Shown piece after piece: positions 55,425 through 60,823 of a DNA stretch of 64,000 bases. Positions within the stretch are counted from its first letter, which is position 1, and the number at the start of each line of letters is the position of its first letter. The stretch covers positions 1 through 64,000 of IMG/VR virus record IMGVR_UViG_3300042515_001753; one strand, 5' to 3'. A model generated the notes under the pieces. That model worked only from the letters and a program-made list of their open reading frames with translations, was not told the origin of the DNA and made no database searches. A program made the position numbers and the translations under genes.

Positions 55425-55834
55425 CAAATGTCTCCATCTTCACGATTTTCACTATAGTATGCGTCAAAAAATCCGTCTGGATAACGCTTCATCAGTTTAT
55501 CAATATTAGTCTGAATTACTTCATCAAAAGAGACATCAAGAGCAATACACGCTTGTGCCACATACCACATCGTATCACCCAGTTCCTTAATCAAGTGAGT
55601 ACGGGTCTCATCATTCCAAGACTTACCTTGAAAGACCATTTTCTTGACTATTTCTAAAAACTCACCACCCTCGGCATTAATTCCCACAGAGGCAGTCAGA
55701 AGACGCTCAATATTAGCACCTTTCTCATCCAACTGAACCATACGGTCAGAAAGAGCAAGGAAATCTTTGGATGCATCAGAAGTTACGGCATCTACGAAGT
55801 TCTGATACTTATTAAAATCAACTCGTTGTGTCAT
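55424..55834 (-). CDS. mazG: MazG-like nucleotide pyrophosphohydrolase
   Basis: AEGGEFLEIVKK, KELGDTMWY, NIDKLMKRYP. Confidence 0.92.
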   Translation of the reverse strand: MTQRVDFNKYQNFVDAVTSDASKDFLALSDRMVQLDEKGANIERLLTASVGINAEGGEFLEIVKKMVFQGKSWNDETRTHLIKELGDTMWYVAQACIALDVSFDEVIQTNIDKLMKRYPDGFFDAYYSENREDGDI

Positions 55835-57003
55835 GAAAATTTAAATCCCTCAAATGATTTTTTTGGTTTATTTTCTTCATTATTATACTCCTCTTCTTTA
55901 CCGCTGTCAAGTATGTCGTTTTGTGCGGACTGTTCTACATCATAAAGTCTCATTTTGGCACGGTCAATTCCAACAACGAAACGCTTAAAGATTGTTGGGT
56001 CATTATATCTGTTTTTAAGTTGCTTCACCATAATCTGCCCTAGACCTTCTAATTCCTCGGTACTAATCAGAGCAAACATAAGGTCGGCAGTAGCAGGAAG
56101 ACCGAACGATTCAGAAGTATCGGTCAATTCTACATCGGAAGAACCAAAACCGCTCCTAGTCGTCTGTGTCGCACTCATAATAGGAACATTAAACTCTACT
56201 GCCAAACCACGAAGTTCTTCGGCAATAGACTTAACCAAAGTATAAGAATTGATATTACTACCACTCTTAAATCGTGAGGAGGAGCAAATATTCAAATAGT
56301 CAATAAAGATAATATCAGGTCTAAATGATTTCTTCAGAGCAAGTTCATTCAGAAGTGCCTTGAAGTGCCCGGAGTGTGCCGAAGCAGTAGGATATTCTTT
56401 GATTACCAAAGAACCCCGAGTCTTCTTGGAAATACCATTTACTTTATTCTCAAATGCTGAGCGTGGTAAATCAATCAGTTGTTGAATTGGAACATTAAGA
56501 AGATTCGCATCAATTCTTTCGGCAATTCTTTCTTCTGCCATTTCAAGAGTAATATAAAGAACATTTCTATTCTGTAGTAAGGCAGAACTGGCAACGTGAC
56601 ACATAAAGAGAGATTTTCCAACTCCAGTATTGTGAGAGGAAACTCCATTAGTGTAATATCTATGATTTGGATGATTTACATTAATATCTACAATAGGTAT
56701 TTGTTTATTGTTTTTATAAACCCGACCAATTTTAATACCCTCGTTAGTAATCAATTTGTATATTAAGTTAGATTGTTCCATTTCTTTAGCGGAAATCCAA
56801 CCTTCAGTAGTTTCAAACAAATGGGACTCATTACAACTAACTTTATTACCCCCCATCATAAGCAATTCATATTCTTCATACATCCCCTTATTAATAAAAA
56901 AATTAACAGGAACATATCCATCGGGAGAATCAACCTCCACTTCATATCCATTATCAAGTAATGTTTTGATTTCAGCAATCGATGTTTCTTTTTCAATCCA
57001 CAT
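55831..57003 (-). CDS. 41: gp41 helicase C-terminal half preceded by split-intein IntC
   Basis: 125-aa Hint region ending SSHN, then TGVGKS, ITLEMAEE, IDYLNI, SATQTTR, KNRY. Confidence 0.95.
   Translation of the reverse strand: MWIEKETSIAEIKTLLDNGYEVEVDSPDGYVPVNFFINKGMYEEYELLMMGGNKVSCNESHLFETTEGWISAKEMEQSNLIYKLITNEGIKIGRVYKNNKQIPIVDINVNHPNHRYYTNGVSSHNTGVGKSLFMCHVASSALLQNRNVLYITLEMAEERIAERIDANLLNVPIQQLIDLPRSAFENKVNGISKKTRGSLVIKEYPTASAHSGHFKALLNELALKKSFRPDIIFIDYLNICSSSRFKSGSNINSYTLVKSIAEELRGLAVEFNVPIMSATQTTRSGFGSSDVELTDTSESFGLPATADLMFALISTEELEGLGQIMVKQLKNRYNDPTIFKRFVVGIDRAKMRLYDVEQSAQNDILDSGKEEEYNNEENKPKKSFEGFKFS
56629..57003 (-). mobile_element. Split intein C-fragment (125 aa)
   Basis: Block B CNESH, block F VDINV..HRYYTNG, terminal HN followed by Thr. 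Confidence 0.93.
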
Positions 57004-57035
57004 TTTGTATAAATACCATTAGCAGGGACAGGGAA

Positions 57036-57704
57036 ATGTTTAATCAAATCTATTCTAACTTATGTGAAGGCAATAAGTCAAGAAAAGAAAACTATAAAAA
57101 ATATTCTGGGTTACACGAACATCATATTATTCCCAAACATATGGGGGGAAGTGATGAAGATTTTAATCTAACATATTTAAATGTTAGAGAACATATATTG
57201 GCACATTATTTGTTGTGGAAGATATATAAAAATCCAAATGATTTAAGGTCTATGAAAATGTTGGGAGCAAACTTATCTCCACAATATAGAAAAATAACAG
57301 GAGAATTTTGTCGTGACAATAATATTGGTATTTTTTCCATTCCATCAAATGAAAGAAAAAAATGGACAATAAAAGGAATAGAAAGTCAAAAACAAGATTA
57401 CTTAACAAATCAAACAAAAAATTTTTACTATTGGAGCACCGAAGAGGGAAGAAAAGAAAGGGCATCTCTTGGAGGAAAGAAGATGGGGTCAAAAGAATTT
57501 AGTTATTGGGCATCTAATGAAGGAAGAAAAACACGATCATCATTAGGGGGAAAGGCGCATAAAGGAAAAAAGGTAATGCATTTGCCCGGAACAAAGGGAT
57601 GGAAAAGAATATCACCAGAAGAAGTTGATATAAAACTAAATGAAGGTTGGAAGTTTGGAACTGGAGAACCAGCACCAAACTCCAAAATCAAGAAATCTTC
57701 CTAA
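57036..57704 (+). CDS. HNH homing endonuclease, inverted between the gp41 halves
   Basis: HEHHIIPKHMGG..NLTYLNVREHILAHYLL; late promoter TATAAATA 57008-57015. Confidence 0.9.
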   Translation: MFNQIYSNLCEGNKSRKENYKKYSGLHEHHIIPKHMGGSDEDFNLTYLNVREHILAHYLLWKIYKNPNDLRSMKMLGANLSPQYRKITGEFCRDNNIGIFSIPSNERKKWTIKGIESQKQDYLTNQTKNFYYWSTEEGRKERASLGGKKMGSKEFSYWASNEGRKTRSSLGGKAHKGKKVMHLPGTKGWKRISPEEVDIKLNEGWKFGTGEPAPNSKIKKSS

Positions 57705-58320
57705 ATCTAATTTTAACTATAGTTTCTGGATGAACGCAACCGGCAAGAGCAATATTCAGAGTCTTATTAGGTAATCCACCTTTTGTGATTTTGTTGAAAT
57801 ATTCTAGGTCAAATTCAATCTTATCTTCTTTACGATGATAAAACTCATATCGTTCCTCATAATTCTGAAGATAATCGTGACCTATATTATTATCAAAAGA
57901 TACTGCCAAGGCATCGGAAAGAATACTGGGAATGGCATCTCTACCTTTTTTATCATCCTTACCATCGGCAATATGAATGGACTCCATGAGTGCCAAGTAA
58001 ATAGCACGGTCACGGCACCACTTTTCGGTAGTATCCAGTATCCACTGCTTATCCACAGGACTATCATTAAGTTTAGAAAGTAATTCTACTATTTCCTTAT
58101 TTTCAGATTCTGTCAAATCTCTACGATTATCAATCTCAATATTGAGTGCTTCTATTGTAATTGAAGAACCATACTTAACGATGAACTCAACAATTTCCTC
58201 AAAAACTATCTTTTCTACTCTTTGCTCATAGTACTCCGGTTGAATAAAAGGAATAACCTTTCTGGCATAGTCTTCATTAAATACTAAGTTTCTAAGGATT
58301 GTAAGTTCAAGTCGTTCCAT
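57688..58320 (-). CDS. 41: gp41 helicase N-terminal half with split-intein IntN
   Basis: TEKWCRDRAIY, SFDNNIGHDY, TKGGLPNKTLNIALAG. Confidence 0.95.
   Translation of the reverse strand: MERLELTILRNLVFNEDYARKVIPFIQPEYYEQRVEKIVFEEIVEFIVKYGSSITIEALNIEIDNRRDLTESENKEIVELLSKLNDSPVDKQWILDTTEKWCRDRAIYLALMESIHIADGKDDKKGRDAIPSILSDALAVSFDNNIGHDYLQNYEERYEFYHRKEDKIEFDLEYFNKITKGGLPNKTLNIALAGCVHPETIVKIRFRKIS
57691..57738 (-). mobile_element. Split intein N-fragment (16 aa)
   Basis: CVHPETIVKIRFRKIS-stop directly after IALAG. Confidence 0.9.
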
Positions 58321-58874: not shown

Positions 58875-59899
58875 ACACCATAACTAAACTCACCCTTGGC
58901 AATCACATCAAGTTTTTCCATTACTTCTGGTGTAAAATATTTTTCGGTATTTTTTAAGATTTCTTTGGCATAAAGTTTCTTACCATCAATCTCATAACGA
59001 CCTGCTACATTCTTCCAGAGTCCACCAATCTCACCAAGTTCAAGAAGACCGTAGTAACGATCAAGACCGCGCTCATCATAATACAGACGGATTTCAACAT
59101 CTTGATTCTCCTTACTTAAACGTGATTTGTGAGTCTTTGCCCTGATAATGTTTCCAATTACTTCCGTTCCATCTTTTTCTTTTGACTTAGAAAGATAGAT
59201 AATTGTAGACGCTGCATATTGCAATCCAGAACCACCAGACATTTGTTTACCACCATAAAGAGACATCGACTCATAGGTGTGATTTGTCACTAGCATAGGA
59301 ATCTTTGCCTGTCCCAATTTGAGAGTCAGCATACGGAAGGCACCTTTGATAAGTTGTGCCTTCGTCATATCACGAGTATCCTTCTCTGCCAGAGCATCAT
59401 TAATTTCTTTGTTGGTAGAAAGCATTCCCAGAGAATCTAATACAAAGATACAAGGGTTTCTTTCATCCTCTTTTTTCTTTAGGTAAATATCAACTGCCTT
59501 GAGTGTTTTGGTACGAAACTCTTCTACCGTAACTACATTGACAACCACCAGACGACTTGTGTCAACTCCCCTACTTTCCAGAAGGGATTTTGTGATTGCT
59601 GCTTCAGTATCAAAATACAGACAATATCCAGTAGGATTATTATCAAGGAAATTTTTAACGACGGCAAGACTGAAGAAAGTTTTTCCAGTAGAAGTTTCAC
59701 CAGCGATTGCAGTAATCTTATTCCCAGATACACCACCAAATATACTGCCGGATACAAGAGCATTAAAAATGTACGAACCCGTATCCACATAAGTTTCAGT
59801 TTCATCAATATCCGAAGCGAGTTGAGTGTATTCTCCACCAATCTCCTTCACTATGTCACGCAAAAAATTTAATCCAGAATCTGCCATTTTTCTACCCAT
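58871..59899 (-). CDS. uvsX: RecA-like recombinase
   Basis: AGETSTGKT, YFDTE, LDSLG, GGSGLQYAAS. Confidence 0.95.
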   Translation of the reverse strand: MGRKMADSGLNFLRDIVKEIGGEYTQLASDIDETETYVDTGSYIFNALVSGSIFGGVSGNKITAIAGETSTGKTFFSLAVVKNFLDNNPTGYCLYFDTEAAITKSLLESRGVDTSRLVVVNVVTVEEFRTKTLKAVDIYLKKKEDERNPCIFVLDSLGMLSTNKEINDALAEKDTRDMTKAQLIKGAFRMLTLKLGQAKIPMLVTNHTYESMSLYGGKQMSGGSGLQYAASTIIYLSKSKEKDGTEVIGNIIRAKTHKSRLSKENQDVEIRLYYDERGLDRYYGLLELGEIGGLWKNVAGRYEIDGKKLYAKEILKNTEKYFTPEVMEKLDVIAKGEFSYGV

Positions 59900-59932
59900 T
59901 TTTAATGATTATACTACAAAAACCACTTCAAG

Positions 59933-60721
59933 TCAACTTTGTTGAGGAACAGCACGATAACCTTTATGTGATTTCGTATTCCTTTTATAATTAAGAAGAT
60001 TCCAAGTAGTTCCAACATCTAAATTATTTTCTTTACAAAATTTAGTAATATTTTTCCCACAAATAATTTCACCCTGAGGATTTATAATTGAAAATTCTTT
60101 ACTTTTCTTCTCCACTATTTTATTTACAATTTCAATATCTCGTTTCTTTCCATAAAGATAATGCTTTTCCCCACTTCTTGCTTCACTCCATTTTTTCTTG
60201 GTTTCTTCTGTGTGAATTCTGCCTTTATTTGCTTCACTTATTTTTAACTTAGATTCTTCACTATGAATTTTTCCTTTCCAAGAATCTAATAATTTATTTC
60301 TATGTTCTTGAGTTAAGGGTATTCCATATTTTGGATGATTTTCTCCACTTTTAGATATACTCATTTTATTTCTAGTTTCCTCAGTCATAACATATGGTTT
60401 TTTACCTTTCTTTGATTCGGACATTCTAATTCTTGCGATTCCATAAAGATGAGAATTATAATATCTACCTTTTGATTTCATTAAAATATGAGCGTGAATC
60501 ATTTTAGTAGTTTTTTTATCCTTAATTCCACACCTCTTAATATAAATCTTTTCCAATAAAGCGTGAGCGATATAATGTTCCCTTGATGTTAGAACTACAA
60601 TCCTTTTATTATTTCCAAAGATACTTTTTGGAAATGTATGATGCTTTTCTGTATAACCTTCAGGTGGAGTTCTGTTCTCTACTTTCCTGATAAGATTGCA
60701 ATAATGCTTTAGATAGTTCAT
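59933..60721 (-). CDS. HNH homing endonuclease with NUMOD3 repeats
   Basis: EKHHTFPKS..LTSREHYIAHALL; repeated HSEESK/HTEETK, GENHPKYG. Confidence 0.9.
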   Translation of the reverse strand: MNYLKHYCNLIRKVENRTPPEGYTEKHHTFPKSIFGNNKRIVVLTSREHYIAHALLEKIYIKRCGIKDKKTTKMIHAHILMKSKGRYYNSHLYGIARIRMSESKKGKKPYVMTEETRNKMSISKSGENHPKYGIPLTQEHRNKLLDSWKGKIHSEESKLKISEANKGRIHTEETKKKWSEARSGEKHYLYGKKRDIEIVNKIVEKKSKEFSIINPQGEIICGKNITKFCKENNLDVGTTWNLLNYKRNTKSHKGYRAVPQQS

Positions 60722-60731
60722 TTATATTCTA

Positions 60732-60823
60732 TTGAGAGTGCATTACTATTTATAATAGAAAAGGTGCCCTGAAGCACCTAATCTTCCTGTGAAATTGCAC
60801 TCTCAACAGGTGTAGTTATTTAT
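60732..60823 (-). promoter_or_regulatory. Tandem late promoters, terminator and 11-nt inverted repeat upstream of the HNH gene
   Basis: ATAAATA 60817-60823, hairpin 60762-60779 + T, TATAAATA 60747-60754, TTGAGAGTGCA/TGCACTCTCAA. Confidence 0.7.

Follow-up and report, generated by a model that had tools for sequence, protein, structure and literature searches.

In the fractured genes described by Dassa et al. in 2009 (PMC2677866), a set that includes the cyanophage-like gp41-1 to gp41-9, an enzyme gene lies in two pieces, each piece carries one half of a split intein in frame, and a free-standing endonuclease gene sits between them. All three features are found at the locus analyzed here, which is part of a 64,000-nucleotide (nt) stretch of DNA (positions 1 to 64,000 of IMG/VR virus record IMGVR_UViG_3300042515_001753; this whole stretch is hereafter called the window). 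The gp41 helicase gene is present as two minus-strand pieces, one encoding the N-terminal extein and a short intein half (IntN) and the other a longer intein half (IntC) and the C-terminal extein, and a plus-strand homing-endonuclease gene of the HNH type fills the gap, such that three reading frames are interlocked (Table 1). The likeness to the fractured genes extends to the late promoter TATAAATA 5' of the endonuclease gene, to stop and start codons that come from the invading element, to the existence of split alleles without the endonuclease gene, and to uvsX and a 2OG-oxygenase-like gene upstream. The layout differs, however, in several respects. All three open reading frames (ORFs) are on one strand in the earlier set, whereas the endonuclease gene is inverted here; the endonucleases there belong to the GIY-YIG or Vsr-like types (an HNH type had been predicted but was not among them), as opposed to HNH here; IntN has 88-105 residues there and 16 here; and a hairpin at the ribosome-binding site (RBS) was found in 15 of 16 loci there and is lacking here. 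Moreover, the 3' end of the endonuclease gene overlaps IntC in the earlier set, whereas here it overlaps IntN tail to tail and it is the 5' end that carries a predicted outward-facing promoter, and the gp41 insertion is at P-SSM2 position 356 there and at the P-loop here. The locus is a fractured gene with a new layout, that is, with an inverted HNH gene and no hairpin.

Other free-standing HNH genes of T4-like phages, such as Aeh1 mobE in nrdA and T4 segG, mobE, and segD, likewise break or adjoin essential genes and are under late-promoter control (PMC2988022, PMC2790892). Individual traits of the present locus have parallels among them: the promoter of a host gene (gene 32) is embedded in the segG coding region (PMC2988022), segD is antisense to its neighbors, although it has no promoter of its own (PMC2988022), and sequence neighboring mobE is mobilized in trans (PMC2790892). 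In Aeh1 nrdA, however, there is no intein and the halves assemble non-covalently; the embedded T4 promoters are co-oriented with the endonuclease gene, whereas the one predicted here faces outward from an inverted gene; and none of segG, mobE, and segD lies inside an intein. In the collaborative homing of F-CphI and the psbA intron of cyanophage S-PM2 (PMC6083498), a free-standing endonuclease gene is again paired with a self-splicing element and the two are believed to move jointly into alleles that lack both, but the partner is a group I intron, the endonuclease is of another family, and its gene lies beside the element and not inside it. Finally, VidaL (PDB: 6vgv and 6vgw) is an atypically split class 1 intein with a 16-residue IntN, cut after the second strand at the S1 site (PMC13014065). 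Fractured genes (PMC2677866), the VidaL-type split (PMC13014065), late and embedded promoters and the antisense segD (PMC2988022), and trans and collaborative homing (PMC2790892, PMC6083498) are already known. When full texts were searched for cyanophage, helicase, HNH, and split intein in combination, only Dassa 2009 came up; the source papers for VidaL lay outside this search, and a similar locus may already be described. In the searchable papers, we did not find described a backward HNH gene at the S1 site of a helicase P-loop intein, with its 3' end overlapping IntN, an antisense outward early promoter, and a full allele series.

A 687-nt insert within a VidaL-family intein

A search of IMG/VR with IntC gave 80 loci, and 78 alleles were classified, i.e., the window and those 77 loci in which the IntC start is complete. 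The compact layout of the window is found in 29 alleles (window included); in 20, the same inverted HNH gene is separated from IntN at its 3' end by extra sequence or ORFs, and eight carry other inverted HNH lineages. Inverted HNH genes are thus present in 57 of the 78 classified alleles, compared with a single same-strand one (L071). Only the HNH 5' end is detected in six alleles (decayed in L050, L055, L069, and L070; cut by the contig end in L049 and L051), four are split without an endonuclease gene, six have a contiguous intein (L061-L065 and L067), and four either have an inverted type-1 HNH gene on a contig that does not reach the IntN side or are unclassifiable.

Comparison with the contiguous alleles defines the insert to the nucleotide. 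Where the latter read ...AGG AAG ATT TCT TGG TGG ATT GAA AAA..., the window reads ...AGG AAG ATT TCT TG(A + 685 nt + AT)G TGG ATT GAA AAA..., i.e., the window is the contiguous sequence plus 687 nt placed within one Trp codon (TGG, intein codon 17), with no target duplication. Because the insert lies inside this codon, both the TGA stop of the N-half and the ATG start of the C-half arise from it, the insert supplying the A of TGA and the AT of ATG. The insert termini (57002-57007 and 57683-57688) form a 6-bp inverted repeat, which may be due to chance in AT-rich DNA.

A first-pass annotation of the window had described the HNH gene as interlocked with both helicase halves, with its 3' end overlapping the IntN coding end by 17 nt and its late promoter within the 32-nt spacer between the HNH and IntC ATGs; all of these coordinates check out. 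It had also held that insertion of the HNH gene probably split the intein and had proposed a search for contiguous-intein relatives. The search turned up the six alleles above, and the 687-nt difference accounts for the split. In the IntC tree, contiguous alleles and split alleles without the endonuclease gene are nested inside HNH-bearing clades, and the difference may therefore reflect either insertion or precise loss. Such nesting would be expected if the gene had homed into contiguous alleles more than once, if it had been lost more than once, or if both had happened. Split alleles without the endonuclease gene show three different scars (TAATG, TGAttATG, and overlapping frames), and there must thus have been at least three independent HNH losses; in these alleles and in the contiguous ones, the halves are translationally coupled or fused. 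Dassa et al. (PMC2677866) proposed the invasion of an intein by an endonuclease gene as step II of their model, in which the invader also brings stop, start, and control signals; natural alleles make this event visible here.

The best solved relative of IntC is the VidaL intein (PDB: 6vgv; E = 1.5e-11), and the contiguous allele L061 aligns with VidaL over residues 5-141 (E = 2.4e-12). Through L061, the IntN region aligns with the N-terminal strand of VidaL, and the split points of the two inteins coincide (RKIS-(M/W)WIEKE vs. TKKG-MIEEKK, with the dash at the split). Beyond sequence homology, the two have in common the split after the second strand, the 16-residue IntN, Cys1, and the terminal His-Asn; they differ in that only about a third of the residues are identical and in that the window intein has Thr at +1 and sits in a helicase P-loop. 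Cys1 is found in all IntN sequences compared, the first 14 IntN residues being conserved across loci and the tail variable, and the block B His (His61), the terminal His-Asn, and Thr+1 are conserved, as read off the line of conserved residues for 52 distinct IntC sequences. The intein is positioned at the P-loop codons (ALAG-TGVGKS), and its removal gives ...NIALAG-TGVGKS..., matching the unbroken reading of intein-less relatives. The two exteins are 1.1 kb apart, in their original order, in one locus, and both on the minus strand. Because the host gene is essential and IntC is under purifying selection, with a ratio of nonsynonymous to synonymous divergence (dN/dS) of 0.24, we infer that the two helicase halves would be joined by protein trans-splicing.

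Conservation is uneven within IntC: in the middle (56700-56880, residues ~42-100), mean pairwise identity is 0.58-0.77, i.e., this part is as variable as the exteins, and at the ends it is 0.90-0.97. The tree of IntC sequences divides into two deep clades. Residues 11-60 (56824-56973) were also considered as ankyrin-like on account of many weak matches to designed ankyrin repeats; no single stretch was significant, the matches are probably an artefact of summing over repeats, and the assignment was rejected.

Other genes have settled in the gap within the intein. Extra DNA separates the IntN stop from the HNH 3' end in L008, L018, L023-L025, L027, L028, L031-L033, L036, L037, L039-L041, L043, L044, L056, and L074, and where the ORFs were listed, most of these loci have same-strand ORFs of 106-257 residues that match PHROG 3708 or nothing (e.g., L025:2590-3222). 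In L071, a different HNH gene (L071:695-1444) follows IntN on the same strand and its stop overlaps the IntC start, which is the canonical fractured-gene layout; the N-half of this allele has a 15-residue duplication around the splice junction. In L022, L029, L048, L055, L062-L065, and L080, the C-extein is broken again after ~residue 161, giving gp41 in three pieces. Where the middle piece was read, in L022 and L055, its last part is the N-piece of the split intein gp41-1 (L055:3350-3661 vs. PDB: 6qaz, E = 5e-48), and these two loci therefore carry two different split inteins in one helicase; for L029, L048, L062-L065, and L080, the second interruption is deduced from the same gap in the match.

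Evidence for mobility of the IntN-HNH-IntC unit

To what extent the intein and the HNH gene share a history separate from that of the helicase can be read from their synonymous divergence (dS), which we compared among 30 distinct loci (435 pairs). The median dS is 0.54 for HNH and 0.44 for IntC, as against 1.59 for the N-extein and 1.52 for the C-extein, and HNH dS is below extein dS in 429 of the 435 pairs; HNH dS correlates with IntC dS with rho = 0.71, compared with rho = 0.11 for extein dS. Mean pairwise identity rises from ~0.7 in the exteins to 0.89-0.93 in IntN, amounts to 0.82-0.91 across the greater part of HNH, reaches 0.94-0.97 at the end of IntC, and then drops to ~0.74, with sharp changes at the intein/extein junctions. 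The whole unit is absent from all 79 scorable N-extein relatives among the matches listed (the loci of the IntC search lie outside that listing), and eight intein-less relatives among these matches are 98%-99% identical to the window in the N-extein and 97%-100% in the C-extein. Contigs from RNA libraries, belonging to relatives of 90%-95% identity, skip 56629-57739 (the intein), only the adjoining Gly-codon base being different. Over the first 35 nt of the C-extein (56596-56629), there are 4-5 clustered mismatches between the window and the near-isogenic empty alleles L082 and L087, followed by none for ~40 nt, and the window and L001 are nearly identical for ~20 nt beyond the IntC end; the mismatch cluster beside IntC is possibly a short co-conversion tract. 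Sequence comparison thus gives good support for mobility, with the IntN-HNH-IntC unit behaving as a mobile cassette: empty sites are precise in near-isogenic phages, and cassette dS is about a third of extein dS, in line with the earlier suggestion that the HNH gene may home the whole unit.

The cassette is modular. The window and L001 are 99% identical in IntC DNA and 79% identical in the exteins, and their HNH genes have 51% nucleotide identity. A possible, if less probable, version of events that is compatible with homing of the whole unit is that the target of the nuclease is the contiguous, HNH-less intein at codon 17, with the intein spreading by other means. The target would then be that of step II of the Dassa et al. 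model (PMC2677866), the contiguous alleles nested among HNH-bearing ones have exactly the matching empty junction, and a shared IntC with different HNH genes is readily accommodated. However, the correlation between HNH and IntC dS, both decoupled from the exteins, the location of the identity steps at the intein/extein junctions and not at the HNH ends, and the lack of the entire unit, not merely the HNH gene, in the nearest relatives all count against this version.

The HNH protein matches the phage homing endonuclease family PHROG 655 (E = 6.8e-15). Its HNH core spans ~residues 20-60 and is followed by two SxEGRKxRxSLGGK repeats; Pfam HNH is matched by 14 of 16 relatives (best E = 1.1e-4). 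The start at 57036 is taken as the real one, since the alternative given by the ORF finder (56982) lies 5' of the late promoter and is unconserved in relatives. The candidate catalytic residues H29, H30, H53, and H57 are invariant in HNH relatives, and the dN/dS of 0.125 (30 distinct loci) indicates purifying selection; both speak against decay of the gene. A Foldseek search with an AlphaFold model of the protein gave local matches to 42 residues of HNH cores (root-mean-square deviation 1.1 A, E above 0.5) and, for the whole model against the PDB, no match at E <= 0.001; an exhaustive VIA-align structure search returned only generic helical matches (Z <= 6.2) and nothing on the HNH C-terminal region. 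As a candidate for an I-TevI-style operator, the HNH 5' region was compared with the empty site and the contiguous junction; the best agreement, 10/16, was reached by 323-425 of 500 shuffles, and the candidate was rejected.

Several observations temper the conclusion that the HNH gene is an active homing gene that carries the whole unit. The Pfam HNH (PF01844) match of the window copy is below threshold (E = 0.012; 16.2 bits vs. a cut-off of 21.4), the protein lacks the C-terminal I-TevI-type DNA-binding domain of L001, L014, and L034, and the AlphaFold model is mediocre (predicted local distance difference test score 71), with local matches to the HNH core only. The RNA-library matches are contigs, for which DNA carry-over is possible; the window and L001 share IntC but not HNH, and the intein and the HNH gene are thus not always co-travelling; and in the lineages with nested contiguous alleles, precise loss could have re-fused the intein. 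The I-TevI-type domain is Pfam PF20987 (E = 3e-8; e.g., L014:3158-3961), and L014, in which a window-type body is joined to a PF20987 tail, may be a fuller form of the protein.

One could therefore imagine that the HNH gene no longer homes and is a passenger, kept for the C-half promoter predicted in its first 16 codons and for the stop and start codons, and spread by ordinary recombination. The missing DNA-binding domain and sub-threshold Pfam match would fit, as would the remnant loci, in which the promoter-bearing 5' end is retained and the rest of the gene is gone, and the precedent of T4, where embedded promoters favor retention of homing-endonuclease genes (PMC2988022). Yet purifying selection acts along the whole ORF, the catalytic His and core residues are invariant, the synonymous divergence of the cassette is a third of that of the host gene in 429/435 pairs, the empty sites are in near-isogenic phages, and the identity steps fall exactly at the intein/extein junctions; we consider a pure passenger unlikely.

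Late and early promoter motifs at the HNH gene

The late-promoter motif TATAAATA occurs 12 times in the window, compared with 6.8 expected, and its placement is not due to chance, since ten of the 12 copies sit 18-59 nt 5' of a same-strand ORF start. Of 38 distinct type-1 loci whose HNH gene is intact, 37 retain it 5' of that gene. In fractured genes of the same-strand kind and in T-even endonuclease genes, a late promoter goes together with a hairpin by which the RBS is hidden on early read-through transcripts (PMC2677866; PMC2988022). No RBS-sequestering hairpin was found at the inverted HNH genes (z = +1.8 for the window copy, where folding is weaker than in shuffles, and +0.6 for another inverted form); in the same-strand allele L071, TATAAATA and the RBS lie in a strong hairpin (-11.5 kcal/mol, z = -3.8, 0/200 shuffles). 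We infer that inversion substitutes for the hairpin.

A consensus scan also revealed a sigma-70-type promoter motif (TTGACT-N18-TAGAAT, 10 of 12 consensus positions) on the minus strand, 48 nt 5' of the IntC ATG and antisense to HNH codons 6-16. Motifs of the form TTGAC-N17-19-TAnAAT are found 14 times in the window, compared with 1.24 times in shuffles (maximum 6), and 12 of the 14 copies are on the coding strand, most of them just 5' of ORF starts, including those of uvsX and mazG; judging by this distribution, this phage has them as a genuine class of early promoters. The mazG copy, a perfect TTGACA-N17-TATAAT located 47 nt 5' of the mazG start, falls inside the gp41 C-extein at its 3' end and is another coding-embedded promoter.

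Several lines of evidence suggest that the motif upstream of IntC is maintained as a promoter. Of 44 distinct type-1 upstream regions, 43 carry its strict form, among them the four distinct regions of the class with only the HNH 5' end, and it persists at loci with a decayed HNH gene; it is in none of the contiguous alleles or the split alleles without an endonuclease gene. Across 40 distinct HNH sequences, no variation is seen at the four third-codon positions that the two hexamers cover, and the third positions in the spacer vary; invariant third positions make up 20.5% overall, which gives P of about 0.0018, and among 167 codon quartets with this geometry, only one shows no variation. HNH residue 7 may be Ser, Tyr, or Phe, yet the -10 hexamer stays TAnAAT (TAGAAT, TATAAT, or TAAAAT), and a divergent HNH lineage, whose protein is 47%-48% identical to the window copy in the alignment and 36%-37% by tblastn, has TTTACA-N17-TATGAT at the same position in other codons (HHS vs. 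YSN). It should be noted, as counting the other way, that the 18-nt spacer is one above optimal and that the hexamers are within a coding region, for which part of the conservation could reflect constraint on the protein. In T4, promoters of host genes are embedded in homing-endonuclease genes and are thought to favor retention of these genes (PMC2988022).

The first-pass annotation had seen no clear minus-strand promoter for the C-half and had proposed that the C-half is read through antisense HNH sequence; given the conserved motif just described, the first statement no longer holds and dependence on read-through becomes improbable. Since it would have its own conserved promoter, the C-half is probably independent of read-through, as judged from sequence; read-through may add to its expression, because no predicted terminator separates the N-half stop from the C-half start. 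As a side hypothesis, late HNH transcription, which would run against that of gp41, may damp helicase supply, as the annotation had also suggested. The stronger form of the earlier model, in which the C-half is promoterless and late convergent HNH transcription collides or pairs with the helicase RNA and so throttles helicase supply, can draw on the absence of a terminator-like site, on the convergence of the transcription units with the late promoter firing into the gp41 unit, and on the ability of inverted homing-endonuclease promoters to create antisense transcripts (Edgell et al., PMC2988022), but is quite improbable in view of the early-class promoter motif, kept both where HNH has decayed and in 20 loci with 0.4-0.9 kb of extra genes between the halves, and of the stable spliced helicase that would presumably already exist by late infection.

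A second free-standing HNH gene, encoding 262 residues with three NUMOD3 motifs (E = 3.8e-25), lies between the genes for DNA polymerase gp43 and uvsX. It has its own late promoter 25 nt 5' of the start, and the uvsX early promoter abuts its stop; the near-isogenic L081 lacks this gene (alignment gap 59872-60823). As to the host phage, the gp41 exteins are 80%-86% identical to gp41 of cultured cyanomyoviruses such as S-SRM01, P-SSM2, and S-SM2, in all of which the gene is uninterrupted, and no close relative of the intein was found among the cultured phages in the collection searched. The window DNA is present in lake-water metagenomes, and a 234-kb IMG/VR contig (L004) also matches; the source is an uncultured T4-like cyanophage of lake water.

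Table 1. Positions of the gp41 locus features and of related features in the window
Feature	Position	Strand	Remarks
N-half ORF	57688-58320	minus	194 residues of gp41 N-extein plus 16-residue IntN; TGA stop at 57688-57690
gp41 N-extein (DnaB-like replicative helicase)	57739-58320	minus	194 residues, ends ...NIALAG; PHROG 19, E = 5.6e-42
IntN	57688-57738	minus	16 codons CVHPETIVKIRFRKIS (57691-57738) plus TGA stop
HNH gene	57036-57704	plus	Free-standing homing-endonuclease gene, 222 residues; ATG at 57036, TAA at 57702-57704
Tail-to-tail overlap of HNH and N-half	57688-57704	both	17 nt; final ~5 HNH codons antisense to IntN
Spacer between divergent ATGs	57004-57035		32 nt; carries TATAAATA
T4-type late promoter TATAAATA	57008-57015	plus	20 nt 5' of HNH ATG
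HNH leader AGCAGGGACAGGGAA (ribosome-binding region)	57021-57035	plus	Conserved across loci
Predicted sigma-70-type promoter for C-half	57081-57052	minus	-35 TTGACT 57081-57076, 18-nt spacer, -10 TAGAAT 57057-57052
C-half ORF	55831-57003	minus	ATG is complement of 57001-57003
IntC	56629-57003	minus	125 residues, MWIEKE...VSSHN
gp41 C-extein	55831-56628	minus	265 residues plus stop; begins at Walker A TGVGKS; Pfam DnaB_C E = 3.7e-16, PHROG 19 E = 1.2e-81
Insert relative to contiguous-intein alleles	57002-57688		687 nt; ends ATTTTG...CAAAAT in gp41 orientation
Predicted early promoter of mazG	55910-55882	minus	TTGACA-N17-TATAAT
Predicted early promoter of uvsX	59936-59908	minus	
Second HNH gene	59933-60721	minus	262 residues
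Late promoter TATAAATA of second HNH gene	60747-60754	minus	25 nt 5' of the gene

Proposed mechanism and implications

Taken as a whole, the account of a fractured gp41 with a self-sufficient inverted HNH cassette, trans-splicing, and homing is, in our judgment, likely to be right. A 687-bp HNH cassette, oriented opposite to gp41, would have come to lie in the 17th codon of a VidaL-family mini-intein and would bring everything that it needs: one of its ends would complete the TGA for IntN and the other the ATG for IntC, an outward early promoter in HNH codons 6-16 would drive the C-half, and the late promoter in the 32-nt spacer would drive the HNH gene. Early in infection, the N-half would be made from the promoter of the uvsX operon and the C-half from its own promoter, possibly aided by read-through, and trans-splicing would join the separately made halves and restore the Walker A motif. 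Early helicase transcripts could not be translated into nuclease from an inverted HNH gene, which would be expressed only from the late promoter, and because the gene faces the opposite way, no RBS-sequestering hairpin would be needed. Late in mixed infections, the nuclease is predicted to cut gp41 alleles that lack the cassette, and repair would copy the whole IntN-HNH-IntC unit, together with ~10-35 nt of flanking extein, into the cut alleles.

More tentatively, the inversion itself may be adaptive, making the cassette a "plug-and-play" module for gene fracturing: orientation would replace the hairpin, the antisense promoter would make the host dependent, late convergent transcription may tune the helicase, and the split would serve as a landing pad, as in the 20 cargo loci and in the phages in which gp41 is in three pieces on two orthogonal split inteins.

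With contiguous, invaded, cargo-loaded, decayed, and cleaned-up alleles side by side, the origin of a split intein becomes directly testable and is not merely modelled. VidaL-type inteins with ultra-short split pieces are prized as tools for labelling, and the present catalogue contains ~50 distinct natural IntC sequences of this family; in some phages, the combination of a VidaL-like intein and gp41-1 in one helicase makes a natural orthogonal pair. For the phage, the locus would be a case of a selfish gene that pays its way, bringing a stop, a start, and a promoter for the gene that it has broken, on which promoter the host would then depend.

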